This document shows, piece after piece, positions 12,033-53,989 of a stretch of DNA of 64,000 nucleotides. The DNA is from Pocillopora damicornis (Eukaryota), in NCBI RefSeq assembly GCF_003704095.1, contig NW_020844495.1, forward strand, positions 124,001 through 188,000. The letters are read 5' to 3'. The number at the start of each line of letters is the position of its first letter. Within the stretch, counting starts at the first letter, position 1. A program made the translations under genes and the position numbers. The notes under the pieces are model-generated. The model worked only from the letters and a program-made list of their open reading frames with translations. It was not told the origin of the DNA and did no database searches.

Positions 12033-15000
12033 TGTACGTTAATTAAAATGATAGCCATTGAAACGTTTCAGACAAAGCCAAAGGTTTTACAGGGCTTAAA
12101 ACGATTCCCTTTAACTTGGCCTTGCCTTTTCCTTGACTATCTGTTCGTTAACAGCGTATTCCAATTAAGGTTTTAATCTCATTTAGTGAGCTGCCAATCC
12201 GGTGTGCGTTTTGCCATCCTGGTGTAATTGAACGATCTTTGACCACTTCCCGTATCCTAATGCCTTTTTTCCCTCACGCCTCTCAAAACATTGAATTAAC
12301 TCGGCAGAGGAGGGCGGGAAAACCATTGTTCAATGGTGGAGCTGGCGAATTGTTTATTAAATACAGTTAACTGGATTAGCTCTTGAGCAATTAACCGTTT
12401 AGAAATCAATTTCTTCCAGTGTTTTCTTGAGCTGGAACGAATGAACCGTTTTCAGAAAAAAAAAATATCTGTGCTCATGGTGTTTGCGTTATTGCTTCAT
12501 TGAAGCAGTACGTGATTTTGGCTTAAATTAAAGAATCAATGATTTTGAATTGCTAATAACTCGAGTCGACAGGCCTGACAACTTTGTCTTCCTATAAAAA
12601 CCTTCAGAAATTAGATTGATTGATGGGTGTTTTTCTTGCCAAAATTAAAATAGGTTCTTTTGTTATTTCTCGACGGGTGAAGCTTTGAAATGCTGCTGTC
12701 ACAATACATTTTGACGACCTATCTCTCTCCTCTCACGTCGACTTGAAATCTAAAAACAAAATCGTATCTTAAAAGGTTTTAACAGATTTCCAGTTCTTTA
12801 ATTCCTTAACACGAGCTGTTGACAGCTACTTCAGCGCTACGCATCTCAACCTGTTTTGATTCGGAGTTGATATTTCAAGGAGATATGACTTAAATCGGTT
12901 AAGTCTTGTTCTCGAGAACATTTCTGTCTGGTTTGAGATTCATCTCAAAATATTAAGAGTAACTTTTCGAGGGGTCATCACTAAAGTTTAAGAAATCTTC
13001 GATCAGAGCCGGTAGTTTTGATATTTTTATGTATCTGAAACTCCCACTATATTCTGATTACTATTTAATGAACTGTGGGGGTGGTCCTGATTTTCAAGAC
13101 CTCTCGGACTGTTTCTTGACACTAAAGTAAGCTTCTACGCTATTTATTTTTCCGATTGTAAGGTGCACAAACCCTGTAAATGTTCCAAGATATGACAGAT
13201 CGTATAATTAAGGCCTGCCAAGCATCGTGCGGTCTTGTCAATGTTTGCAAATGTCGTAGGACATCAGCATATCTACTGTGGCTCAAAACACAGGAAACAG
13301 CCACATTGACCTCAACAAACATCTAGGTTTTCTACAATAAAACACAAATGTTTTGAATACCTGTTAGGGGGATTACTATCAAAGTGACAAAGATGTTTCT
13401 GTGACCTTCAACAGCGCATGTATAGACCCTGTTTCTGCCAATGTTTCATTTCACTGATGGTATCGACCGCACATCACAATGAATCGACCCAGAGAAATTT
13501 TTGCCCCCCAAAAAAACCTTCTTTGCATGCAGTTCGATTCTTCGTTGAGGTAGAAGTTCATCGAGGAGTATGAAGTTTACTCAATTAAGTTATTGTTTTC
13601 GTTACCTCGTTTTTCGTTGTTAATCTAAATCTCAGTTTCATCTTTAAAGGTCACAAGGACAGCTCTTTGGCGTCATCTACTATCGTTTTTGACAAGTGGG
13701 CAGAATTGCGATGACTTTGATTTTGTCAGCGATAGCAAATATCACGGAATCATTTCCCACGTCTTCAAGTCTTTTTTCTTCAAACCAGAACCTCGTTCAA
13801 GCTCGGTGATCTCTCCATAAGCTTGAGATAAAATCTCAGTGCAGAAAAGAACGGTTAAATGAGAATTTACGCCAGGTAATTATTTTGAGGTTCTCTTTAT
13901 CAAGTCCACGCCTCTTGTCTGAGCCTTTTCTAGTTTTAATAGTGGGCCGGACTAACTTTTTGACCCGAACGCACTAGGAAAACAATTTGGCGCCTCATCA
14001 TGACACGAAGCAGATATTGTCATCAAAATATCTTTTATGGCTAAACTCAAACAAATCAGTGTGTTTTATGGTTTTCGAAAAGCTTTCTTGACACTGCATG
14101 AGCGAAGGGTGATGCCAAAAGAACATTTTTTGCTCGGAGATTAAAGGCTTACCGTCTGAACTTCCGAAATAAGATTGACCTCACACTAAATCTATTTGCT
14201 ATTTCCACCTCAAATTGTTTCATTTACAATGAAGTCTGGGCTCTTGGTAATTAGAAAATCCCTTCGAGGGAGCCGGTGATTATAAATGGTTTGAGCTGAA
14301 AGTAGTAAAATCTCTCCTGCTAATTCTCAGAAACAATTTGGAGGTTTTCACTCTCTGGGATATCACTTCAGCCGGAAATTATTCAAGCGTAAAAAAATTA
14401 AAACAAAACAAACTTTAAACGGAGTCGCATGTCCATGCATACAGACCGCACATGCTGGATTGTTGAAGAATGAGTATAAGAGATGTAGGGTATGTTTAGT
14501 TATCTGATAATTTAATTGAAAAGGATTTTTCTCAAAATATTGAGAACGTTAACAGCACTTGAATCATAACCCTTAAGTATCTGAAACTCTTACACCAAAT
14601 CGAACATTTTCATGAAAATTTTTTAGGGTGTTCTTCTGCTGTGGAGCTTATGGAATGAAATGTGAGTTATACTTTGTTATCTTGTACCTATTTTAAGGAG
14701 TCTGTTGAGGGATCCATGCAATTTTTTACAGACAATACACCTGTATAAATTACAAATGAAGAACTCGGTCAAATTTGTCAAACGTTCAAATAGCTGATTG
14801 GGATGATCGACCAAATGAGATAACAAACCAGATCCGGCTGCGGTGTGGTATAGTCCCAGCCGTGCTTATAACAAGTCCTATGATCTTGAGAGAACTGATT
14901 TCAAAGAAAAAGGCGAAAGGGGCTCTGCTAAAACTGCCAACATCTTACCTTCTGGATCTCATACATTCGTATCCGCGATGGGGAAAAAGACAACATCTAA

Positions 15001-26934: not shown

Positions 26935-27425
26935 CTACCAGCTCCAATAAGGATTGCTAGGAGGAATGTATGATGAACTTACTGCAGGAAAATGATAGAA
27001 GTCTGAAGGATCGTGCCGTAAATATCCAAAATTATTGACCGAAGCGCCATGACAAGGCTGGCCATCTCGCACTAAGACAGGCACAGGAACAGTTCTTGGG
27101 GTGAACAATGGAGGTCCTTCATTCATAACTCCTTTTTCAAAACTCTGTTTCTTGTATTTATATCGATGATTCTGAAACCAAATTTTCACCTGCGTCGGGC
27201 TTAAATTGATTATTCTCGCGAGCTGTTCGCGCTCCGGCGCGGAGAGGTACCTTTGTTGACGAAACCTTCTTTCGAGTTCATAAGTTTGCGCCTTGGTGAA
27301 CAGAACTCTTCGTTTCCGCTTTTTTGGCGGATCGTTCAAGTCATCTGGCGTTTCCTCTCGCTCAGATATTTCTTGGGAGCCCGCTGAGGATGTCGAAGGC
27401 CTTTCTGTCGGGCTCGGATGTGGAT
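26935..27425 (-). CDS. Nkx2.2: NK2 gene B, coding exon 2 (most canonical Nkx2.2-like paralog); ~232 aa spliced
   Basis: Acceptor tttttgtttttccgccgtaacag|AT; [34 protein letters not shown]...WFQNHRYK; NK2-[18 protein letters not shown]; ends YWSW. Confidence 0.95.
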
Positions 27426-27874
27426 CTGTTACGGCGGAAAAACAAAAAATTTCATTAATGTTTCGCCTATGTAACGATATCTACGACACAACTAAAGAGC
27501 TGCGAAGTTGTAAGAAATTAGGTGAACTGTAAGCCACAGTAATTAGCCTGTTGTCCCTTACACGAGGCACATAAAGAAAACAACCTTCAAAACTAGAAGC
27601 AATATGGCATTCACTCAATTAAAATTTGAAACTGCAGTCATCTTTCAGTCGTGCTTGCAATTGCCTCGTAAAACGCGTCATTGTATGTTTTCCGGAAAAG
27701 AAATTCGGTTGTATGCGAAAAATCCGTCGCGTCGCGCGTAGTTTACAGAAGAAACAAAATAAACTCTTTCGAGAACTTCGGCGAGATTTTTACCATCTAT
27801 CGAGTTTAGCACTTCATAAATACCGGCGTTTACTTTTCGCTCGATCAAAGATACAAAATCAAGTTCATTCTTAC

Positions 27875-28082
27875 TTGTATATGAGTACTCTTGGCCTTGA
27901 TTACACACTACAGAGCCACATGACGGAGTATGAGTGTTTCCGCCAGGGCAATGATAACTCTCGGTTGAGGACGATTCATGGGTTGTTTCGCTTTTAGACG
28001 GGCATAGTCCGGTGTCGGGTAAATTAAGAATGTCTCTGACGGAGAACGAAGTCATGTCGTAAGATCGATCGATTGCGGACAT
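27875..28082 (-). CDS. Nkx2.2: NK2 gene B, coding exon 1 (TN motif MTSFSVRDILNL; alternative start at 28055)
   Basis: TN/eh1 motif; donor A|GTAAGA after 27875; 208 nt (phase 1). Confidence 0.88.
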
Positions 28083-28166
28083 GGATTTCAGATGAGTGCC
28101 ATTACAAAGCCAAACACAGTCGCAATTCAGTCATACTCGATCCGAAGCGGTTCGCAGCCAAACTTC

Positions 28167-28386
28167 TTATACTTTGGGGCGTGCCCAGGCTCTCAAGTGT
28201 TGAACAAGATGTTTGACATTAAACAAATGTTGCCCAAATTCGCGTAAGTCGACTTCTATTGATAGGTTAAGGTGGTGACGAAGTTGACATCACAATTAAT
28301 TAGAAAGATAGCAATTGAATGCCCTGTCACACGTAAACCCCTTTCGAATGACAGATTTGCCCTAAAAGGCTTCATCTGACATGTCA
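28167..28386 (-). promoter_or_regulatory. Proximal promoter of gene B: TATA-like, GC/KLF box, NK2 site, six TGACA sites
   Basis: TATAAG near 28167-28172; CACGCCC; TCAAGTG 28193-28199; TGACA/TGTCA at 28214, 28285, 28325, 28349, 28377, 28382. Confidence 0.65.
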
Positions 28387-31300
28387 CGCTGGGCGGGCTG
28401 ACCCGACTGCTTGCTTCCCCCCGCTTAGAACTCAAACAATCATTGCTTTCTCTTGAATGGGTCACTTTATTGGAGTTCTGACGTCCAAAACTAATTTCAA
28501 GACACTTCCTCAACTTGCGACCCATATAAATGTCTCAAGGACTCAGCTCATGTAGCCTTATCCACGCCTCTTCACATTTTGAAATATCGTTGTAATCGAA
28601 GTTGAAAGGTTGAACACCAGCTAATGGTCGATCGGAAGAGAGAACTGTTGGATTAGTGATAAAATCTATAAAAATTTGCACCTTTGCTAATCGCCCCGGC
28701 TTTCCATGTTTTTTCCTTCTTATTTTCGTCTAAACCTATTTACGATATCACGCACACGTTTGAGTGTTTGGAAGGTGTTATATACTATTGTTTTTATTAC
28801 ATATTTTTTATTATAGACTGAATTCTTGAGAAATACCACTTTTTATAAGTGGTTGCTTATTTGCAGTGCGCTGCTCTCTCAAGACTACCGGCTGCTAAGC
28901 TTGTTCAGCAAATGGCTTTCTACATATTGTACGAGGAGCATTTGGACACTGTCAACATTTTAATTACGTGAATGTTCGTTTGATTGTGGGGTTGTAAACG
29001 CTTCGTTAATGAGTCCCAGTTGCATTTTAATATCTTTCCTAAAAAGCCAAATGTTTACGTTGGGTTGGCGCAAACCGTCAGAACTTTCACAAAAGAATTA
29101 AGGAATAAAAAGTTTTCTTTCGTCTTACAATGGGTGCGCTATAAATAAAGCTGGACAGACATTGATATCCGAGCAGTTTTATAATTTTTTTTTTAACAGA
29201 ACGAGTTCGCGTCTTTCCTAAAGTAAATAGCACTAGAGAACACCTGAAAGACAATTCTTAAACCATTTACTTAAAGGACTTATCCGTCCTTGAGCGAAAA
29301 CTGAGTATATTAACTGTGAACTCCACTGAGTAGTAGTTTGCGAAGCGTTTCCGCATTGTCATTGAAACGATGGCATTATAAATGCGATCTTTTGAACAAA
29401 GGGAAAAATTACCGAAGTCCTGTATGAACTACAGTATTTTCCTTATACATGAGAGCACTGGTTGAGGCTTTTCAACAGGAACAGGTATGTTCCAAGAGTT
29501 GTAATTACCACCAGATCTTGGCTTTACGCCGGCCCGGTGAGGGTTTAGCACGCGGCGAGCTGCGTAGGGGTCGAATGGGAAGTCTTGAAACAACATGCGC
29601 CCTGAATAGATTCTCTAACACCCATTTGTTCGACCTCCACCAAAGGCTCGTGCCAATACCTGCTAAGAACCTTCTTAGTACTTAAGATATTGGCTACTTA
29701 ACAGGAAAAGGTTTTTTTTCTTTCAGCCTCCTCGTGTGAAACGAGTCCTCTTCATTGTTTCCTAATGCGTTCAGCTGACTTATTTTTTGGTGTTCATTTA
29801 GTTCCCGATACGTCTCCTTCATCGAATTTAAAAGACGGTTCTTAACGCCTCACTCCTACGTCGGAGAGAGAGAATGAAAAACTAGCGCAAATTTAGGATG
29901 ATCGAACGTTTCACAAGCTCATAAATATTTTACAGTCGGAGAGATGAAGTACAAGGAGGTATTACGTTGCTAAACGTGTTTGCTTAACAACCAACTAACT
30001 CAAACAAACTGTTTGCTCGTGTCACTCGGTGATCGACAGGCAGACCATTATAGCATTAGGGCAAAGATATTCTAATTTAAGCTCTGTGAATATCATGAAT
30101 CAATAGAAAGTTCTACACACAAAAGTGTTCTGTTTTTCGCGTGTTCCGTACAACTGACTGACTGACATTCAAACTCAACAATGCGCGGCTCATAAATAAA
30201 CATTACAACCTAAAACGTCTAATACAGTTCAATTAGGGAGGATTAAAATTTTACGCCTTGAGATAGACTGATTCCTTTATTCTCTGTTCTTATCCTTTTC
30301 TCCCTTTATCGTAAGGAATGAATAATTCCTGTTTTTCCTACAGTAAAAAGCAGTTCAAACGAGAGAGGCGCACAGACAACATGAAAAAGAACGGCGAATT
30401 TTTATTGTCTACCGGCTGAACCATTAGCACCCGTTCCTCCAAACAACCACTAATTAGTGTTAAAAAAATTCGACGGTTTTGCAAAAACCACTCAGTAAAT
30501 GGCTATATCGCAATAAGGCGATCGTATTACACCAAAAGGGCCGCCCACTTGGGCTATGAGAGCGTAGCTTGAAAGCCTTTCAAGAGATCCATTGCGTTTT
30601 ATAAGATGAAAACATCTTCAGATCTCAACAGCGTGTAAAGGCTTTACCCTAACATTAACTCTTGAAACACATCGAGGGCCTTCAAGTGCTGCGTGGTTGA
30701 ATGCATTGCTTCCGTGAATTTGGTTTAACTACAAGATGAAGTAGCGATGCCGTGGGCAACAACAGACTGTACGTTCGAGTGCAAATTTCATAAACAATAC
30801 AATACTTACTTCTTGACTTGCACATTTCATTGAAAGTAATTTTAAGAAACAAATTAGCAAATGACTTAAGAAAAGTGTTACTTTAAAACTCTTTTGCGAG
30901 GAAAAAGACAGCTTTACCTCGAAGGGATAACTATACTACGCTAAAATGGATTAAAATTTATAAAAACCGAACTTGAACCGAGATGCAAATAATATTTTTT
31001 TTCTCTGTCGTATCCAGTAGTCCATATCGTTTTACAGCGGTGAAGCAAATCAATATTTTATGGGGTAGACTTACAAAATTACTTGGATAAAAATTCTTGC
31101 CAAAACCATGTGTTTATGGATGGGATAGTTCAGTAGTTTTGCTTGGACAGTGTTGTGAGAATTCGGGGTAAAAGTAATTCCTCCCAACCGGAGCAAAGTG
31201 TTTAATTTCAAGGAAATTGAAATGGTTTCTTGCCCTGTTTTCAGTCAAAAGGAACAGCTGGTTGTGACCGAAAATATATCGTTAACCAGGTAAAACACAT

Positions 31301-34300
31301 TGTATTCATTAGAACCCGGTGAAGCTTTTTTTGCTGGTGAACTAAACTAGAACTGCCTGGCCGTGAATAATTCCTAGCTTTAGGGTATAAGAAATTTTAT
31401 TCCCAGATGAAGAAACATAGGAAACAACACGACCCAGTGTCTTCAGTGATACACGTTTGATGTGACCTACAAAACAACCGACAAAAATTAGAATTCCTGT
31501 TGATTTTGTCTCAGGAATAAATAGTCTTTTTTTTTTTCTTTTACGTTTTTCAAAAATTAACCTTTCATTGCCTTAGGGAACAATTTTTCTTGATTCGTTC
31601 ACTTTTTACGACAATACAGGTCAAACGGTGTTGGGAACGTAAAAGATAATCCGTTTCGTCGATCGACCCAAATTATGGCCTGTCACGTCAGCTATTTAGA
31701 GTCAAGTAAGAAATGATCACTCATGCCACTTCTCCGTCCCTTTAATTTGAGTAGTTAAAGTGCGTTTCACCAGCCGGAGAAATAATTCAAAACTGCACTA
31801 GATCACGCATATTTTGTTCACTTATTCAACCTTTCCGGAATGAACGGGCGTAATTACAAATTTGACAACGGTCCGAAAATGCCGGATTCGTTATGTACAG
31901 AGAGTCGGTGGTGCGGATGTATTCCTTTCTAAGTTGCATGATTTTAACAATATGAAAGCTGAGGCAAATTGTCACAAAGGATCGTCTCATGAGCAAACAA
32001 CTGAGCGTCCTGTTTCTGATAGTCAAACATCTCCTTGTATCTATTTCATTAGAACCATCTTCATTGCTAAGTGGAGAGACGTTGTGTTTCCGCTCATGTC
32101 ATTTTCAGCCCGGTATAAGAATCCATCAAAGATGCTTGATTCGTGCAAATTTAAAAAGAAACAAACTAGGCGGAGATTAATGAACGGAGTTAAATTCTTG
32201 TTCGTTACATCCCACGGAGAGGCTTGTGATTCCAGTTTTTTTACCACGTGCGAAGAATTACAAATGGAACAAGGTATGTTTTTTTGTGAGGCACACTGTA
32301 CAAAAGGCGTACGAGATTCGGTGCGTGCAGAGTATAAGAATCATCGCGCGTGCATACAAAGCAGAACTAAGCAGTTTACGGTGATGTTTCGTCGAAGCCT
32401 CTTTAGATTTTATAAATATCCCTTGAAAAGTCTAAACTATTGAAGTCACATCGTATGTAAATAAGTACGACTCGTCTTTGGAAAAACAAAGAAAATTTTA
32501 TTTGTACGGGTAACATGTTGTGGTTATTGAAGAGATGGATTGAACCCCCTATCGATCACTCAAAGGAAACTACTCCTAAGTTTTGACTAGCCCTAATAAA
32601 TCGCGTGCACAGAATAACAACTTACCTTTAGAAATTTTAGTCATAACTAAAAGATACTCTCAAAAACTAAGTCTACCCTTGTTAACGATGAATATAATGG
32701 GATCATTTAATGTATTCGCTATGAATTAAAACCTATTCTTTGGCCAATTCTTTAGTTGCCTTGCTGCAATTGTTCAATTTAGACAAAATGTCACATCTGT
32801 CAGTTGATCCAGGGAAAAAGTTTTTTTTTGCATTGTTAGTGAATCCCACACAATGTTTGCTCTCATAGCCTTTCACGTAAATGAAAACAAGCAAACCAGC
32901 ATTGTCGATATATCAAGCGTGATAACTAATGCAAACATTTTGATGCTAGAGTCCCACGAACAAATTACAAGCGAGCTGTGACGTGCAGCCTTACTTAAGA
33001 TTTTAAATGAGAAAATCTCTACCGCGCGTTTCATCAAACAAACTTAATCGATCTATTAAGAAACAAGTCGAAATCTTCACATGGAATCTTTGAAAGTTTA
33101 CCCTCGTGGAATCAGGTTACAGCTCTTGACTAAAGGATTTTCAATTCACGGTTTGTAGTGGAGGAGAAATTGAGACGTATAAAATTTGGTCGCGTAACAC
33201 TTGAAAATCTGTTGAAAGCCTCTCTCGTTGTCATATTAAAAACAGGTATTAAGCCAAAGGATCTCGCCTTCAAGAAAACTAAATGTTTTTTTGGCCATTT
33301 TGCTAGACAAAATAAAAGAATTTTTAAGCACCAACCCGCCAAACTTAACAAAGTAACAAAACTTTGATTACATTTAGTTTCACGCGCTTTTTAACACCGC
33401 CCATCAATTTGAGTTATTACTCCGCGTGTTTGTTTTCATTGTTACGAGATTTATCACCGAAAAATGTTGAATTTTCGCCTTTACAACGATCGAACTCTCC
33501 ACTCTATTTAAATCAATAACCCCTTACATGGACTGACTTGATGAGGTAACAAGGTTGGTCTTCTTACAATTTCTCCTCTCCGTAGCCTAAACAAACCTGG
33601 TACAAACCGTAGCGCCACAAGCGCGAAACTTTTGTGATGCCGTTAAACGTAGTCAATGCAACATAAATCTAAAGCCATAACAAAATCTGTGAAATAATCA
33701 AAATTTCGACGCTTTTTTTTTTTTTTTACGAAAATTTGTTCAAAACAAAAATGTATCCAGTTCTTTAAAGGAATTCCAATAAACCCGTGTGATTTTTCAG
33801 TTGCTTAATTCTTTCATTAGCCATTATAATTCAACGAACACTGGACAATGCACCACCAATGCCACGCGATTTTGTTCATCCTCGATCTAAAGGAATGAAT
33901 CTTGCACAAAGGGGGGTATTTTTAACTATTCTCCTGCGACTAGGCTGGTCATTTTTTGGATGAAATAAAATTGAATGACATAGTTGGTATATACAATGAG
34001 AGAGACGAAGTGAGGGTAGTCATTATAAAGTAACACAATAAACAATTTCCAATGAGATATGATAATAGCCCACAGAGAATCCAATAAAACTTACAGTTTT
34101 CGAGGCCAAATTTCACTTTTCTCCAGCCATTAACTGTAGGGATGAATGTCTTTGTTCAAAATGGAATATGCTCTTTTGAAATCTCCGAATTTGAAGCAAG
34201 AAAAGGGACCGTAACGCTATATATCCATATAAACTTTTGTGAAAGTTTCCATATTTGGTCATTTTGTGTGAAACTATATAGCACATATGTTATAGAAACA

Positions 34301-35091
34301 AAACCTGACAATTTCAAAACATTTTCTAGCAGATTTTCTCTTAATTTCAATTATTGTGCAAAACAGTAGCTCTGCTGGTAAAATAGAGCATGGCTTATTA
34401 TTAATTCATGACAAAAAAAGAGTAAGACAATTCACTCACCCGACGAACTGTATACAAAATTAGTGTGCGAAAACAATTAGATTTTAACATAAATTAGTCC
34501 AATAGAGCGACCATGAATAAGTCAGTAAAAAGAATACAACGTTGTACAGAGAATACTTTGCAAGAGAAATAAAAATAATCTGACACATTTAACCCGTGGG
34601 TGGACATATGTTTGAATGGCAAAAAGTTCAAGGTAAAATGTCAACAGTGAAGAATGTTATTCTGTCCTTGGGAGGGCGATCTGCAAAACACTTCTAATTT
34701 CCTGAGATGTTCAAGAGGAGGCAATGTTTACAATGTCACTTCTCTGAAATAAGATATGAGAGCTTTTCGCAGCATATCATGGTGATTGTATCGACGTTCA
34801 ACAAAACTTTGATGTCCTTCACTTGTTAATTCCCAAAGGAGGCCTCATGGTCGCTCTTCTGTCAACGGAAGAGGGAATAATTGAAAAGAAATTGTTTGGG
34901 ATGGCTATACAGGTTTTATGATTTCCAAATCGTGACGGCGTAATAAACGAAACAATGACAACAGAAATGAACGTAAACTTCCTAATCCGCCAATCCAATT
35001 AAAACCTAAATCAACAGTGTGCAATGCCACGGTATAACATGTGTGAAATAAAAGAAAAAGGAAACTTTTCGCGCCTAGAGAATGGTCTTGC

Positions 35092-35262
35092 TGTCACATT
35101 AGGTCCGTTGATGTGACAGGCATCTAGTCATGCCTTCACAGCAATCAGTTGATGTGTCAGTCTTGTCAGGGCGCTTTCTCTTAACAAAACAGCCTGATGA
35201 CATTCAGGGCAATTTGTTTTATTTCAAATGGCCTGTCATTTGTTTGAAGTGAAGCCCCGCCC
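35092..35262 (+). promoter_or_regulatory. Proximal promoter of gene C, collinear with the gene B promoter
   Basis: TGACA/TGTCA at 35092, 35114, 35155, 35164, 35198, 35234; TGAAGTG 35245-35251; GCCCCGCCC 35254-35262. Confidence 0.65.
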
Positions 35263-35371
35263 TATGTTCTAGGACCGGCCTGCCCTGTGCGTGCGACCTG
35301 CTTTTAAATCTTGTTATCTTAGCATCCAACACAATGGGACCCATTTGAGACCGTTTACACGAAACGTGAGG

Positions 35372-35540
35372 ATGGGATCCTTTTCCATAAGAGACATTCT
35401 TAATCTTCCAGAGGACAGAATCCGATCATTGAATTCCAAGAGCGAAGAACAGATGTCATTTCAAGACAGGAGCTACCCTCCACAGACGTTGTCCAGTCCA
35501 GACGAGCCAGAGGCAAACGCGCCAGAAACGGCCAAGTCAA
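35372..35540 (+). CDS. Nkx2.2: NK2 gene C, coding exon 1 (TN motif MGSFSIRDILNL)
   Basis: ATG at 35372; donor A|GTATGA at 35541; 169 nt (phase 1). Confidence 0.88.
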
Positions 35541-36216
35541 GTATGAATTATTTTAGTGTTCATGAAAATTTTTTTATGGTAGATATAAGGGCGCCGTATT
35601 CAAAAATATTATTAAAAGAGTCGAGTACAACGCAGGAGATAAGCCGACTTTCTTGAGAGTTTATTATGAAAGATAGCGGGCGAGGATTTTCTTCATTAGA
35701 GTTAAGAATAGCGAGGCCTTCAAACTTCATCATATCTGAGAAATCTCGCAGTTGCCCTACTTAACTGTCAAGCTGTATATTGTGCATCACAGAAGCGTAT
35801 AACATACAGTAGCGACTATCTGAGGTTGTTCAGCATTGTGGCGAATAGCGCATCGTTTCTACCACCACTTATATCCTCAATAGAAACGGAAAAAGCTTCA
35901 AGTGATTAATTCTGCTATGGTGCGAAAAATATGTCAAGAAATTGTCAACCTTTTGAGTTTGCGAGCCGGTTCTGTTTCGACCGGCTGTGTTCAAAAACTC
36001 TTATTCTGTCTTTGTTAGCGTGATTAAACTTCGATGATTTGAGGTTGTTTGACTTCAAGGACTTTTAAATGAGCAAATTCAGCGTTTCAATCTTGAGATA
36101 AGGTGAATAGAGGCAATCCAGAATAGATTATTCAGGCTTCATAATGTAACTGGTAGTCTGTTGAAAATCGCATCGAAGGGACTCTAACTTGAACAACTTT
36201 CATTTCATATTCACAG

Positions 36217-36656
36217 GCGGCCAACAAACAAGCGTCTCGCAGTTTGACTCCGTCAAAAAGGATCATTCCGACAAAGACTTGAAGAAACGCAAACGGCGAG
36301 TGTTGTTCACGAAAGCGCAAACTTTTGTCTTGGAAAGAAGATTTCAACAGCAGAGATACTTATCTGCGCCCGAACGAGAGGAATTGGCGAGAATCGTAAA
36401 TCTTACACCAGCCCAAGTGAAAATTTGGTTTCAGAATCACAGATACAAATATCGTAAGCAGATTAGCGAACGAGGACCTTGGGACAAACCGTACTCTCCG
36501 CTTTCACAAGGAGCGTTGCTAAATGGTTCTGGACAATTCTGCAGTTGTGTTAGTCCTTCGTGTAACTATCTAAGCGGGTCGCCATACCAAGGCGACTACT
36601 TGCACTATCCTCCCTCCGTAAACTCTTCCTACATACAACCTACAACTTATTGGTAA
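36217..36656 (+). CDS. Nkx2.2: NK2 gene C, coding exon 2 (homeodomain; NK2-SD decayed); ~202 aa spliced
   Basis: Acceptor catttcatattcacag|GC; [34 protein letters not shown]...WFQNHRYK; C-terminus alignable to gene B. Confidence 0.94.
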
Positions 36657-53000: not shown

Positions 53001-53456
53001 ATGATCAAAACAGTAGGCTTTTTACGACTGGCTAGCTAAACCCTCTAGGAGAAAACTAATTTGCTGATGAAACAAGAGGTAGATATGAGTCTCGATAAGG
53101 CCGCTAAAACCTTACTGGTTGGGGCAATTCACGAAAGACCGCGACCACAGAGGTGCTGAGGCATTACAGTTGGTTCTTTACTATAGAGGCTGCTGTATCT
53201 GGTTATGCGAGTGTACTGACCAAAAGGGTGAATGGCTTAAGACGATTATAACGCTTCAAATAGTGGCTTTTCATTAAACGATTTAGTGGTCTACAGCCTT
53301 ACTGCTGGTAAAGATGAAATATGATTATTTGAGACTTTGGTATAAATAACACTGCACGCAACTCTCTCATCTATAACTCGCCTACATATTGATCAACTAG
53401 TTATATTAACTCAATCGATAATGGTAGGCTGTAATAATTTGTTCGTTTTCTCATAG

Positions 53457-53989
53457 AATCTGGGATTAAAGAAACAGAAGGTAATACAGATTCCTCAGCT
53501 GCTACCAAGATAAAAGCGTCAAACAAGAAAAAGAGACGTGTTTTATTTTCAAAGGCTCAAGTGTACCAATTAGAAAGCAGATTTCGCGTTCAAAAGTACC
53601 TTTCGGCTGTTGAAAGAGATCAGTTGGCTAGAATGATCAACCTGACACCCTCACAGGTGAAAATTTGGTTTCAGAACCATCGATACAAGAGTCGTCAGCA
53701 GATTAAGCATGATGGACAGTTCGAGGACGACCCCAAGGTTCCATGCGGGGGACACTACCATCCGGCAGAGGTTCCGTGCTTACAGCCATGCCCGTATTAC
53801 GAGCCTAGGGACACAATCAATTCATTCTCCTCGGCTTTCATGCCTTGGTCTTCAGTATGTCCAGCCTCTTCGCTGGCTCCAATAAACACTTTCTCGTTCT
53901 CACCACCTCCCGGTCAACATTTCGTACGCTATCCTTCGTGCCAATATGAAAGCCAAAGACAACCGCTGTATCCTCCAGTTTTTTATTAA
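53457..53989 (+). CDS. Nkx2.2: NK2 gene D, coding exon 2 (divergent homeodomain); ~251 aa spliced
   Basis: Acceptor tttgttcgttttctcatag|AA; frame open through [34 protein letters not shown]...WFQNHRYK (the ORF track starts mid-homeodomain at a GTG). Confidence 0.93.

Follow-up and report, generated by a model that had tools for sequence, protein, structure and literature searches.

An ancient, largely transcribed upstream module shared by paralogous NK2 homeobox genes of corals and sea anemones

Introduction

Conserved non-coding elements outside vertebrates are scarce and little studied. Near vertebrate developmental genes, duplicated conserved non-coding elements have been described (PMC2781166, PMC1896008, PMC3595034), and other systems close to the one considered here include conserved inhibitory upstream open reading frames (uORFs) in Hox mRNAs (PMC8892498), deeply conserved elements in the 5′ regions of other animal genes, none of which is an NK2 gene (PMC4613772), and the NK2 cluster on chromosome 2 of Nematostella, which the available passages of its description report together with 145 ultraconserved elements common to two sea anemones (PMC10719294). 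Here, we explored a 64-kb stretch of contig NW_020844495.1 of the coral Pocillopora damicornis (the window; the genome comprises 234.35 Mb in 4393 contigs), in which a six-frame scan identifies five NK2-class homeodomains, those of genes A to E. An earlier note on this DNA had claimed that the promoters of the head-to-head genes B and C are collinear, paralogous cis-regulatory modules implying selection. Our analysis reveals an ancient, selected and collinear upstream module that is indeed common to these paralogues, but most of it is a transcribed 5′ leader, and part of it recurs upstream of gene A.

The module resembles the duplicated vertebrate elements in that it is conserved among orthologues, recognizable between paralogous transcription-factor loci, and partially retained or lost, with different subsets in A, B and C. 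Unlike them, it is found in cnidarians, its duplication was local (tandem or inverted) rather than part of a whole-genome duplication, and its position is proximal, within the leader, whereas the vertebrate elements are distal enhancers. The likeness to the Hox uORFs lies in a homeobox mRNA with a conserved upstream reading frame before the main start; the NK2 uORF differs from them in being only 4 codons long, with unconstrained internal codons and a start codon in strong context, in being common to paralogues, and in having a conserved 12-nt flank, and it is only a putative regulator. With the 5′-region elements of other animal genes (PMC4613772), the module has in common non-coding blocks located a few hundred bases from the start codon in a fixed relative position, but its conservation, unlike theirs, has been demonstrated within Hexacorallia only. 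The Nematostella cluster consists of the same clustered NK2 genes, and the available passages of its description contain no paralogous leader module or uORF (PMC10719294). Our literature search returned no report of this NK2 module or of any paralogue-shared conserved non-coding element in cnidarians.

Conservation of the upstream regions among orthologues

For comparison, we located the corresponding loci of a second stony coral (L008, an ENA assembly, 86% protein identity) and of the sea anemones Actinia tenebrosa (L011), Nematostella vectensis (L012) and Actinostola (L013) through protein searches with the exons followed by contig look-ups, and added the B leader of one more coral from a metagenome contig (L022). 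In Pocillopora, the start codons of B and C are 7.3 kb apart, and the two genes are head to head in all 4 comparison species as well, at distances of 5.4-9 kb. Therefore, their duplication predates the split between corals and anemones.

Alignment of the upstream 450 nt showed that the B region is nearly unchanged over ~230 nt between corals and anemones, with the C region conserved less strongly. Hidden Markov models built exclusively from anemone sequences find the Pocillopora leaders with E = 3e-42 (B) and 5.6e-18 (C), and when the 7.3-kb intergenic region of Pocillopora was compared with the anemones using BLAST, the only non-coding matches were both leaders and an element at 29960-30141. 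Between Pocillopora and L008, the identity of the leaders (0.87 and 0.86) exceeds that of other intergenic DNA (0.57-0.58), of the introns (0.66-0.72) and even of the homeobox exons (0.83 and 0.74), and of all 100-bp windows in the 9.8 kb compared, the one with the highest identity, 0.98, lies in the B leader. The leaders are conserved among orthologues above the neutral level. The footprint, which extends over one further coral and three anemones, therefore supports the purifying selection on both upstream regions that the earlier note had proposed. Its observation that the upstream non-coding DNA is better conserved than the adjoining coding part of exon 1 likewise holds in the footprinting and in the profile tests described below: the first exons of B and C can be aligned only around the TN motif, where BLASTP aligns just 17 residues. 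The TN motif is a short N-terminal motif, FS.RDILNL, of NK2 proteins. At the bilaterian loci compared, from a sea cucumber and a snail, neither the blocks nor any alignment signal was found, the gene models there being without a TN-motif first exon.

The mid-intergenic element at 29960-30141, which may be a shared enhancer, is matched in Nematostella (E = 8e-20) and in Actinia (E = 1e-14) and includes both a GTGACA site and a TTTGTTT motif. Additional peaks of identity between Pocillopora and L008 are located at 28556-28710 and 34669-34795.

Collinear similarity between paralogues

Two blocks had been singled out as common to B and C, and both lie where they had been placed: block 1 at 28331-28319 of the minus strand in B and 35112-35123 of the plus strand in C, and block 2 at 28235-28212 (minus) and 35207-35228 (plus), respectively, with block starts 96 bp apart in B and 95 bp apart in C. 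Both belong to a collinear similarity of ~300 bp between the two upstream regions. Evidence of this similarity comes from a local alignment of profile against profile, 6 B leaders versus 5 C leaders with coding sequence removed, which scored 66.7, compared to 18.2 +/- 2.6 for column shuffles (z = 18) and 19.9 +/- 3.0 for shuffles of 8-column blocks, in which the motifs stay intact but their order is scrambled (z = 15). Without the uORF block described below, the score was still 41.1 against 17.1 +/- 2.6. The intervals of the earlier note, aligned locally, scored 21.5, against 11.2 +/- 1.7 and a maximum of 20 in 1000 dinucleotide shuffles (0/1000). To avoid that choice of intervals, we also took the 330 nt preceding the start codon of each gene and set them against genuine segments drawn at random from the window; the score observed for B and C of Pocillopora was reached in 3 of 2000 such controls, and the same test within other species gave 0/2000 for L008 and 12/2000 each for Actinia and Actinostola. 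Thus, orthologue footprinting and profile tests agree that the upstream regions of B and C are collinear and paralogous, and the similarity between these loci, as well as between A and B, is significant.

An alignment of 11 leaders displays the same order of nine elements in the B and C groups, including the additional TGTCA sites, which line up between B and C in matching order as had been claimed. The 5′-most element is a CTGTCA site (28349-28354, minus, in B; 35091-35096, plus, in C), of which TGTCA is present in 4/5 B orthologues and at the corresponding position of C. It is followed by TGAC(A), that is, block 1, with a TGACA core in 5/5 B orthologues and TGAC, with TGAT before it, in 4/5 C orthologues. 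The third element consists of TGTCA and then GTCA: the paired TGTCA sites of C (35155-35168, plus) align with TGTCAAC..GTCAC of B, such that the B TGTCA at 28285-28289 corresponds to the C site at 35155-35159. Next comes the TTGTTT core of block 2, accompanied by TGTCAAA in B and found in all C orthologues, and then C(T/C)TGT. The sixth element, (A/G)AG(T/A)G, is represented in B by CACTTGAGAG (28190-28199, minus), the opposite strand of which reads TCAAGTG, an NK2-type site, and in C by TGAAGTG (35245-35251, plus), with AAGTG in 5/5 C orthologues; the two align, and AG.G at this position is invariant in 11/11 leaders. A C-rich box follows, of the Sp/KLF type in B (CACGCCCC, 28176-28183, minus) and a GC box in C (AGCCCCGCCC, 35253-35262, plus); at the B position, two anemones have CACACCC and Nematostella is without the box. 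The series ends with AATGG....CATTTGA.A.C..T.TACAC and the start codon. Spacing is nearly fixed as well: from the TGAC of block 1 to block 2, it is 103 nt in 5/5 B orthologues and 94-101 nt in C. Within B, the block TTCAATTGCTATC...TCTAATTAAT...TGTCAAC (28283-28320, minus) is near-invariant from coral to anemone; it is common to gene A and absent from C.

The leaders are also distinguished by their motif content. Each contains 6 TGACA/TGTCA sites, which makes the B and C leaders the two densest 250-bp windows of the entire 64 kb (mean 0.79, sd 1.0 per 250-bp window). These sites occur in both orientations, several are kept from coral to anemone, and some lie upstream of most of the RNA contig 5′ ends. 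Homeodomain factors of the TALE class, among them Meis and Pbx-Meis pairs, have TGACA(G) as their core site, and judged by this consensus, the leaders hold an enriched and conserved cluster of TALE-type sites. We take TGTTTA and AACAAAG to resemble Fox and Sox/TCF sites, respectively. CNCRCCC is the Sp/KLF site and T(C/T)AAGTG the NK2 site, the canonical form of which occurs in the three anemone C leaders (TCAAGTG or TTAAGTG) and on the opposite strand of Pocillopora B.

Upstream of gene E, the segment 62376-62625 holds a cluster of 5 TGACA/TGTCA sites, which ranks third in density within the window. TATA-like elements, TATAAGAAG in coral B and TTTTAAAT in coral C, were considered and rejected, being inside RNA contigs and not conserved in anemones. 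Where corals have TATAAGAAG, the B leaders of Actinia, Nematostella and Actinostola contain a perfect TGACGTCA palindrome of the CRE type, which aligns with 28163-28175 of the window.

The module is common to B and C but is not special to this pair. Upstream of gene A, on the minus strand, there are copies of the TAATTAA block of B (12019-12070) and of block 2 (11954-11972), all within 11954-12070; in collinear alignment, A and B score 27.0 (0/2000), which is stronger than B versus C, and the B model finds the region upstream of A at E = 0.0067. Therefore, the module predates the duplications that produced A, B and C. No significant collinear similarity was detected between the upstream regions of A and C, or between that of E and those of A, B or C. 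Given that A matches B and B matches C, but A does not match C significantly, gene B looks closest to the ancestral layout, with A and C keeping different subsets of it.

Transcribed leader and upstream open reading frame

The earlier description of these regions as promoters stands insofar as they are conserved upstream modules, but spliced RNA-seq contigs place most of the module in the 5′ leader. These contigs carry the full coding sequence, and their 5′ ends are not start sites. The B mRNA contigs of Pocillopora begin at 28235, which is the first base of block 2, at 28210 and at 28131, and Montipora B contigs begin at the equivalent of 28288; in four further RNA runs, B contigs spanning the exon junction reach 28132, 28189, 28241 and 28534. 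For C, the mRNA contigs of Pocillopora have their 5′ ends at 35040 and 35000, ahead of the two C blocks. At least some mRNAs thus contain block 2 of B and both blocks of C, which do not lie strictly upstream of the start site. Because the spliced contigs include these blocks, most of the module is a transcribed 5′ leader and not a promoter upstream of the start site.

Two further observations concern the transcripts. At 28775-29900, 5′ of B, a contig of 1169 nt from one poly-A RNA run has a depth of 11, above the intron level, and might represent an upstream exon, non-coding RNA or DNA carry-over. In Stylophora, positions 1-26 of the B mRNA contig L005, which lie 5′ of a TGTAC located ~25 nt ahead of the start codon, diverge from all other corals; this may reflect an alternative first exon or an assembly join.

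The strongest block shared by B and C, which the earlier note overlooked, contains a uORF of 4 codons. In B, it occupies 28088-28102 of the minus strand (ATG 28102-28100, TGA 28090-28088; context GTAATGG), and in C, the block spans 35333-35359 of the plus strand, from the ATG at 35334 to the TGA at 35348, followed by GACCGTTTACAC. The upstream ATG (uATG) is present in 11/11 leaders, 38-52 nt before the conserved start codon and in the strong RNNATGG context. The reading frame has 4 codons (M-x-x-I/L-stop) in 10 of the 11 and 9 codons in Nematostella C, with the stop 22-34 nt before the main ATG in every leader. Codons 2 and 3 vary freely, and the stop is kept even in Montipora, where TGA has become TAA. 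Both uORFs lie inside spliced contigs, so that the mature mRNAs contain a conserved uATG whose frame ends before the main ATG. The 12 nt after the stop are conserved as well (GACCGTkTACAC), and the uORF alone does not account for this flank.

A hidden coding extension, in the frame reading NGTHL in B and C, was rejected because orthologues have stops and shifted frames. Since upstream frames carry stops in anemones and the spacing between the block and the main ATG does not preserve the reading frame, the leader is non-coding and does not encode an N-terminal extension.

At position 28099, all four RNA runs and three mRNA contigs read a different base from that of the window, changing uORF codon 2 from GCA to CCA; the start, length and stop of the uORF are unaffected by this variant. 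Coral B orthologues read CCATGTAC where anemones read CCGTGTAC (28080-28084 of the window; 9396-9400 of L008), a change that creates a new in-frame ATG and adds 9 codons before the ancestral MTSFS start. This new coral ATG sits just 5 nt past the uORF stop.

Origin and function of the module

We consider it likely that the module as a whole is a duplicated ancestral NK2 proximal regulatory region composed of transcription-factor sites and a uORF. According to this explanation, B and C would have arisen by a duplication that included ~300 bp of DNA upstream and that preceded the divergence of stony corals from sea anemones, and both copies, and in part gene A, would still hold the ancestral proximal regulatory region with its order unchanged and its spacing nearly fixed. 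A cis-regulatory function is suggested by the sequence features described above. The upstream part of the module would act as DNA, as a promoter-proximal array of transcription-factor sites, with TGACA as a candidate input for TALE-class factors (Meis/Pbx), the T-rich core as a candidate Fox/Sox-like input, and the NK2 site as a candidate for auto- or cross-regulation. Such a shared array would give the paralogues a common transcriptional input, and the uORF would limit translation of the main frame.

Several observations weigh against this explanation. In Nematostella, the pairwise comparison of B with C in the 330-nt test is not significant (294/2000). Using nhmmer alone, the uORF block is the single one to reach significance between paralogues by itself (E = 1.2e-4), and the B model finds blocks 1 and 2 of C only at E = 1.4, so that the case for these two blocks rests on their collinearity, neither being significant singly. 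The NK2-type site is degenerate in several orthologues (TGAAGTG, TTGAGTG, CTCGAG), and the factor-site assignments, which depend on consensus sequences, designate candidates. With contig ends that are not start sites, the division of the blocks between promoter and leader is uncertain. Finally, each leader contains 3-8 other, non-conserved uATGs, which are not depleted, a number seldom expected in a major mRNA that is translated efficiently.

The main rival explanation, which we regard as unlikely, holds that the module works at the RNA level, as a long conserved 5′ untranslated region with sites for RNA-binding proteins or translational control and little or no role as DNA. It is favoured by the presence of B block 2 and both C blocks in spliced RNA contigs and by the fact that the best-conserved shared block is the uORF. 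Against it stand the TGACA-type sites, which are found in either orientation and, in part, farther upstream than most of the contigs reach. Conserved RNA structure was rejected on the grounds that the RNAalifold consensus is weak (-7.2 kcal/mol over ~260 nt, with almost no covariation) and that no Rfam family matches the leaders, the one chance-level hit (E = 0.45) being located elsewhere; the persistence of non-conserved uATGs also speaks against an RNA-level role.

Convergence, whereby B and C would have gained sites for the same regulators independently, without inheritance, is very improbable. In its favour, the motifs that B and C have in common are short and belong to widespread types (TGACA, TTGTTT, GC box), but their order and spacing are the same in both genes, and scrambling the motif order destroys the score (z = 15 and 8). 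Moreover, the 27-nt uORF block is near-identical between an anemone B and a coral C, and A has a different subset in common with B, as predicted by descent with loss.

Inverted neighbours can exchange sequence, and recent gene conversion could in principle have homogenized the two upstream regions. The cross-species score matrix led us to reject this scenario, to which we would assign hardly any weight: B versus C scores between species equal or exceed those within species, reaching 31.5 for Actinia B against L008 C, and every leader clusters with the orthologous ones from end to end. A similarity due to chance, to composition or to a repeat fragment present in both regions, for which the only argument is that the intervals of the earlier note were picked by eye, is practically negligible in view of the shuffle, real-sequence and profile controls, of the degenerate block-2 pattern, which occurs at only two places in the 234-Mb genome, those in B and C, and of the uniqueness of both regions, each of which matches only itself in that genome, such that an origin from a repeat or transposable element is likewise rejected.

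Within the preferred explanation, that of a duplicated ancestral regulatory region, a more far-reaching version is conceivable, namely, that the anthozoan NK2 cluster has preserved its ancestral control region in this module, which would combine a factor array subject to NK2 auto- or cross-regulation with a translation-gating uORF and would have persisted for over half a billion years in no fewer than 3 paralogues. We put this forward tentatively, as doubtful in its full extent. The module might also extend to octocorals, medusozoans or the bilaterian Nkx2.2/vnd genes.

The module is short and sharply delimited, and it occurs in Nematostella, a species amenable to transgenesis. Therefore, it offers a test case for how duplicated developmental genes keep or divide their regulatory input, for the antiquity of TALE, Fox and NK2 inputs to NK2 genes, and for minimal uORF control of a homeobox mRNA. 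More generally, apparent promoter conservation may sit in the transcribed leader.

Genes of the window and further observations

The five homeodomains of the window are located at ~10.8 kb (gene A, minus strand), ~27.2 kb (B, minus), ~36.4 kb (C, plus), ~53.7 kb (D, plus) and ~61.6 kb (E, minus); runs of N lie at positions 89-4143 of the window. On the minus strand, the coding part of B exon 2 spans 26938-27425 and is separated by a GT..AG intron (27426-27874), the splice joint of which is seen in four RNA runs, from exon 1, with the main ATG at 28082 and a second, in-frame ATG at 28055. On the plus strand, C comprises an exon 1 coding region at 35372-35540, starting with the main ATG at 35372, an intron at 35541-36216 and exon 2 at 36217-36656. 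TN-motif first exons were located for A, B, C and E.

Protein searches were made exon by exon. B is 93% identical to the Stylophora protein annotated as "Nkx-2.2a" and also matches "Ventral nervous system defective 1" of Acropora; judged by these matches, it is an Nkx2.2/vnd-type orthologue. C is, by the same kind of comparison, the orthologue of a Nematostella protein that the sources name Nkx2.2E or Nkx-2.8. In exon 2, gene E shows 100% identity to the Pocillopora damicornis protein designated pdam_00016675 in its source. For gene D (53438-53989), a TN-motif first exon was not found in the window, and its homeodomain is the most divergent among the five.

Within the introns, stretches at 35821-35998 (C) and 27779-27874 (B) are 0.94-0.95 identical to L008, far above the rest of the introns.

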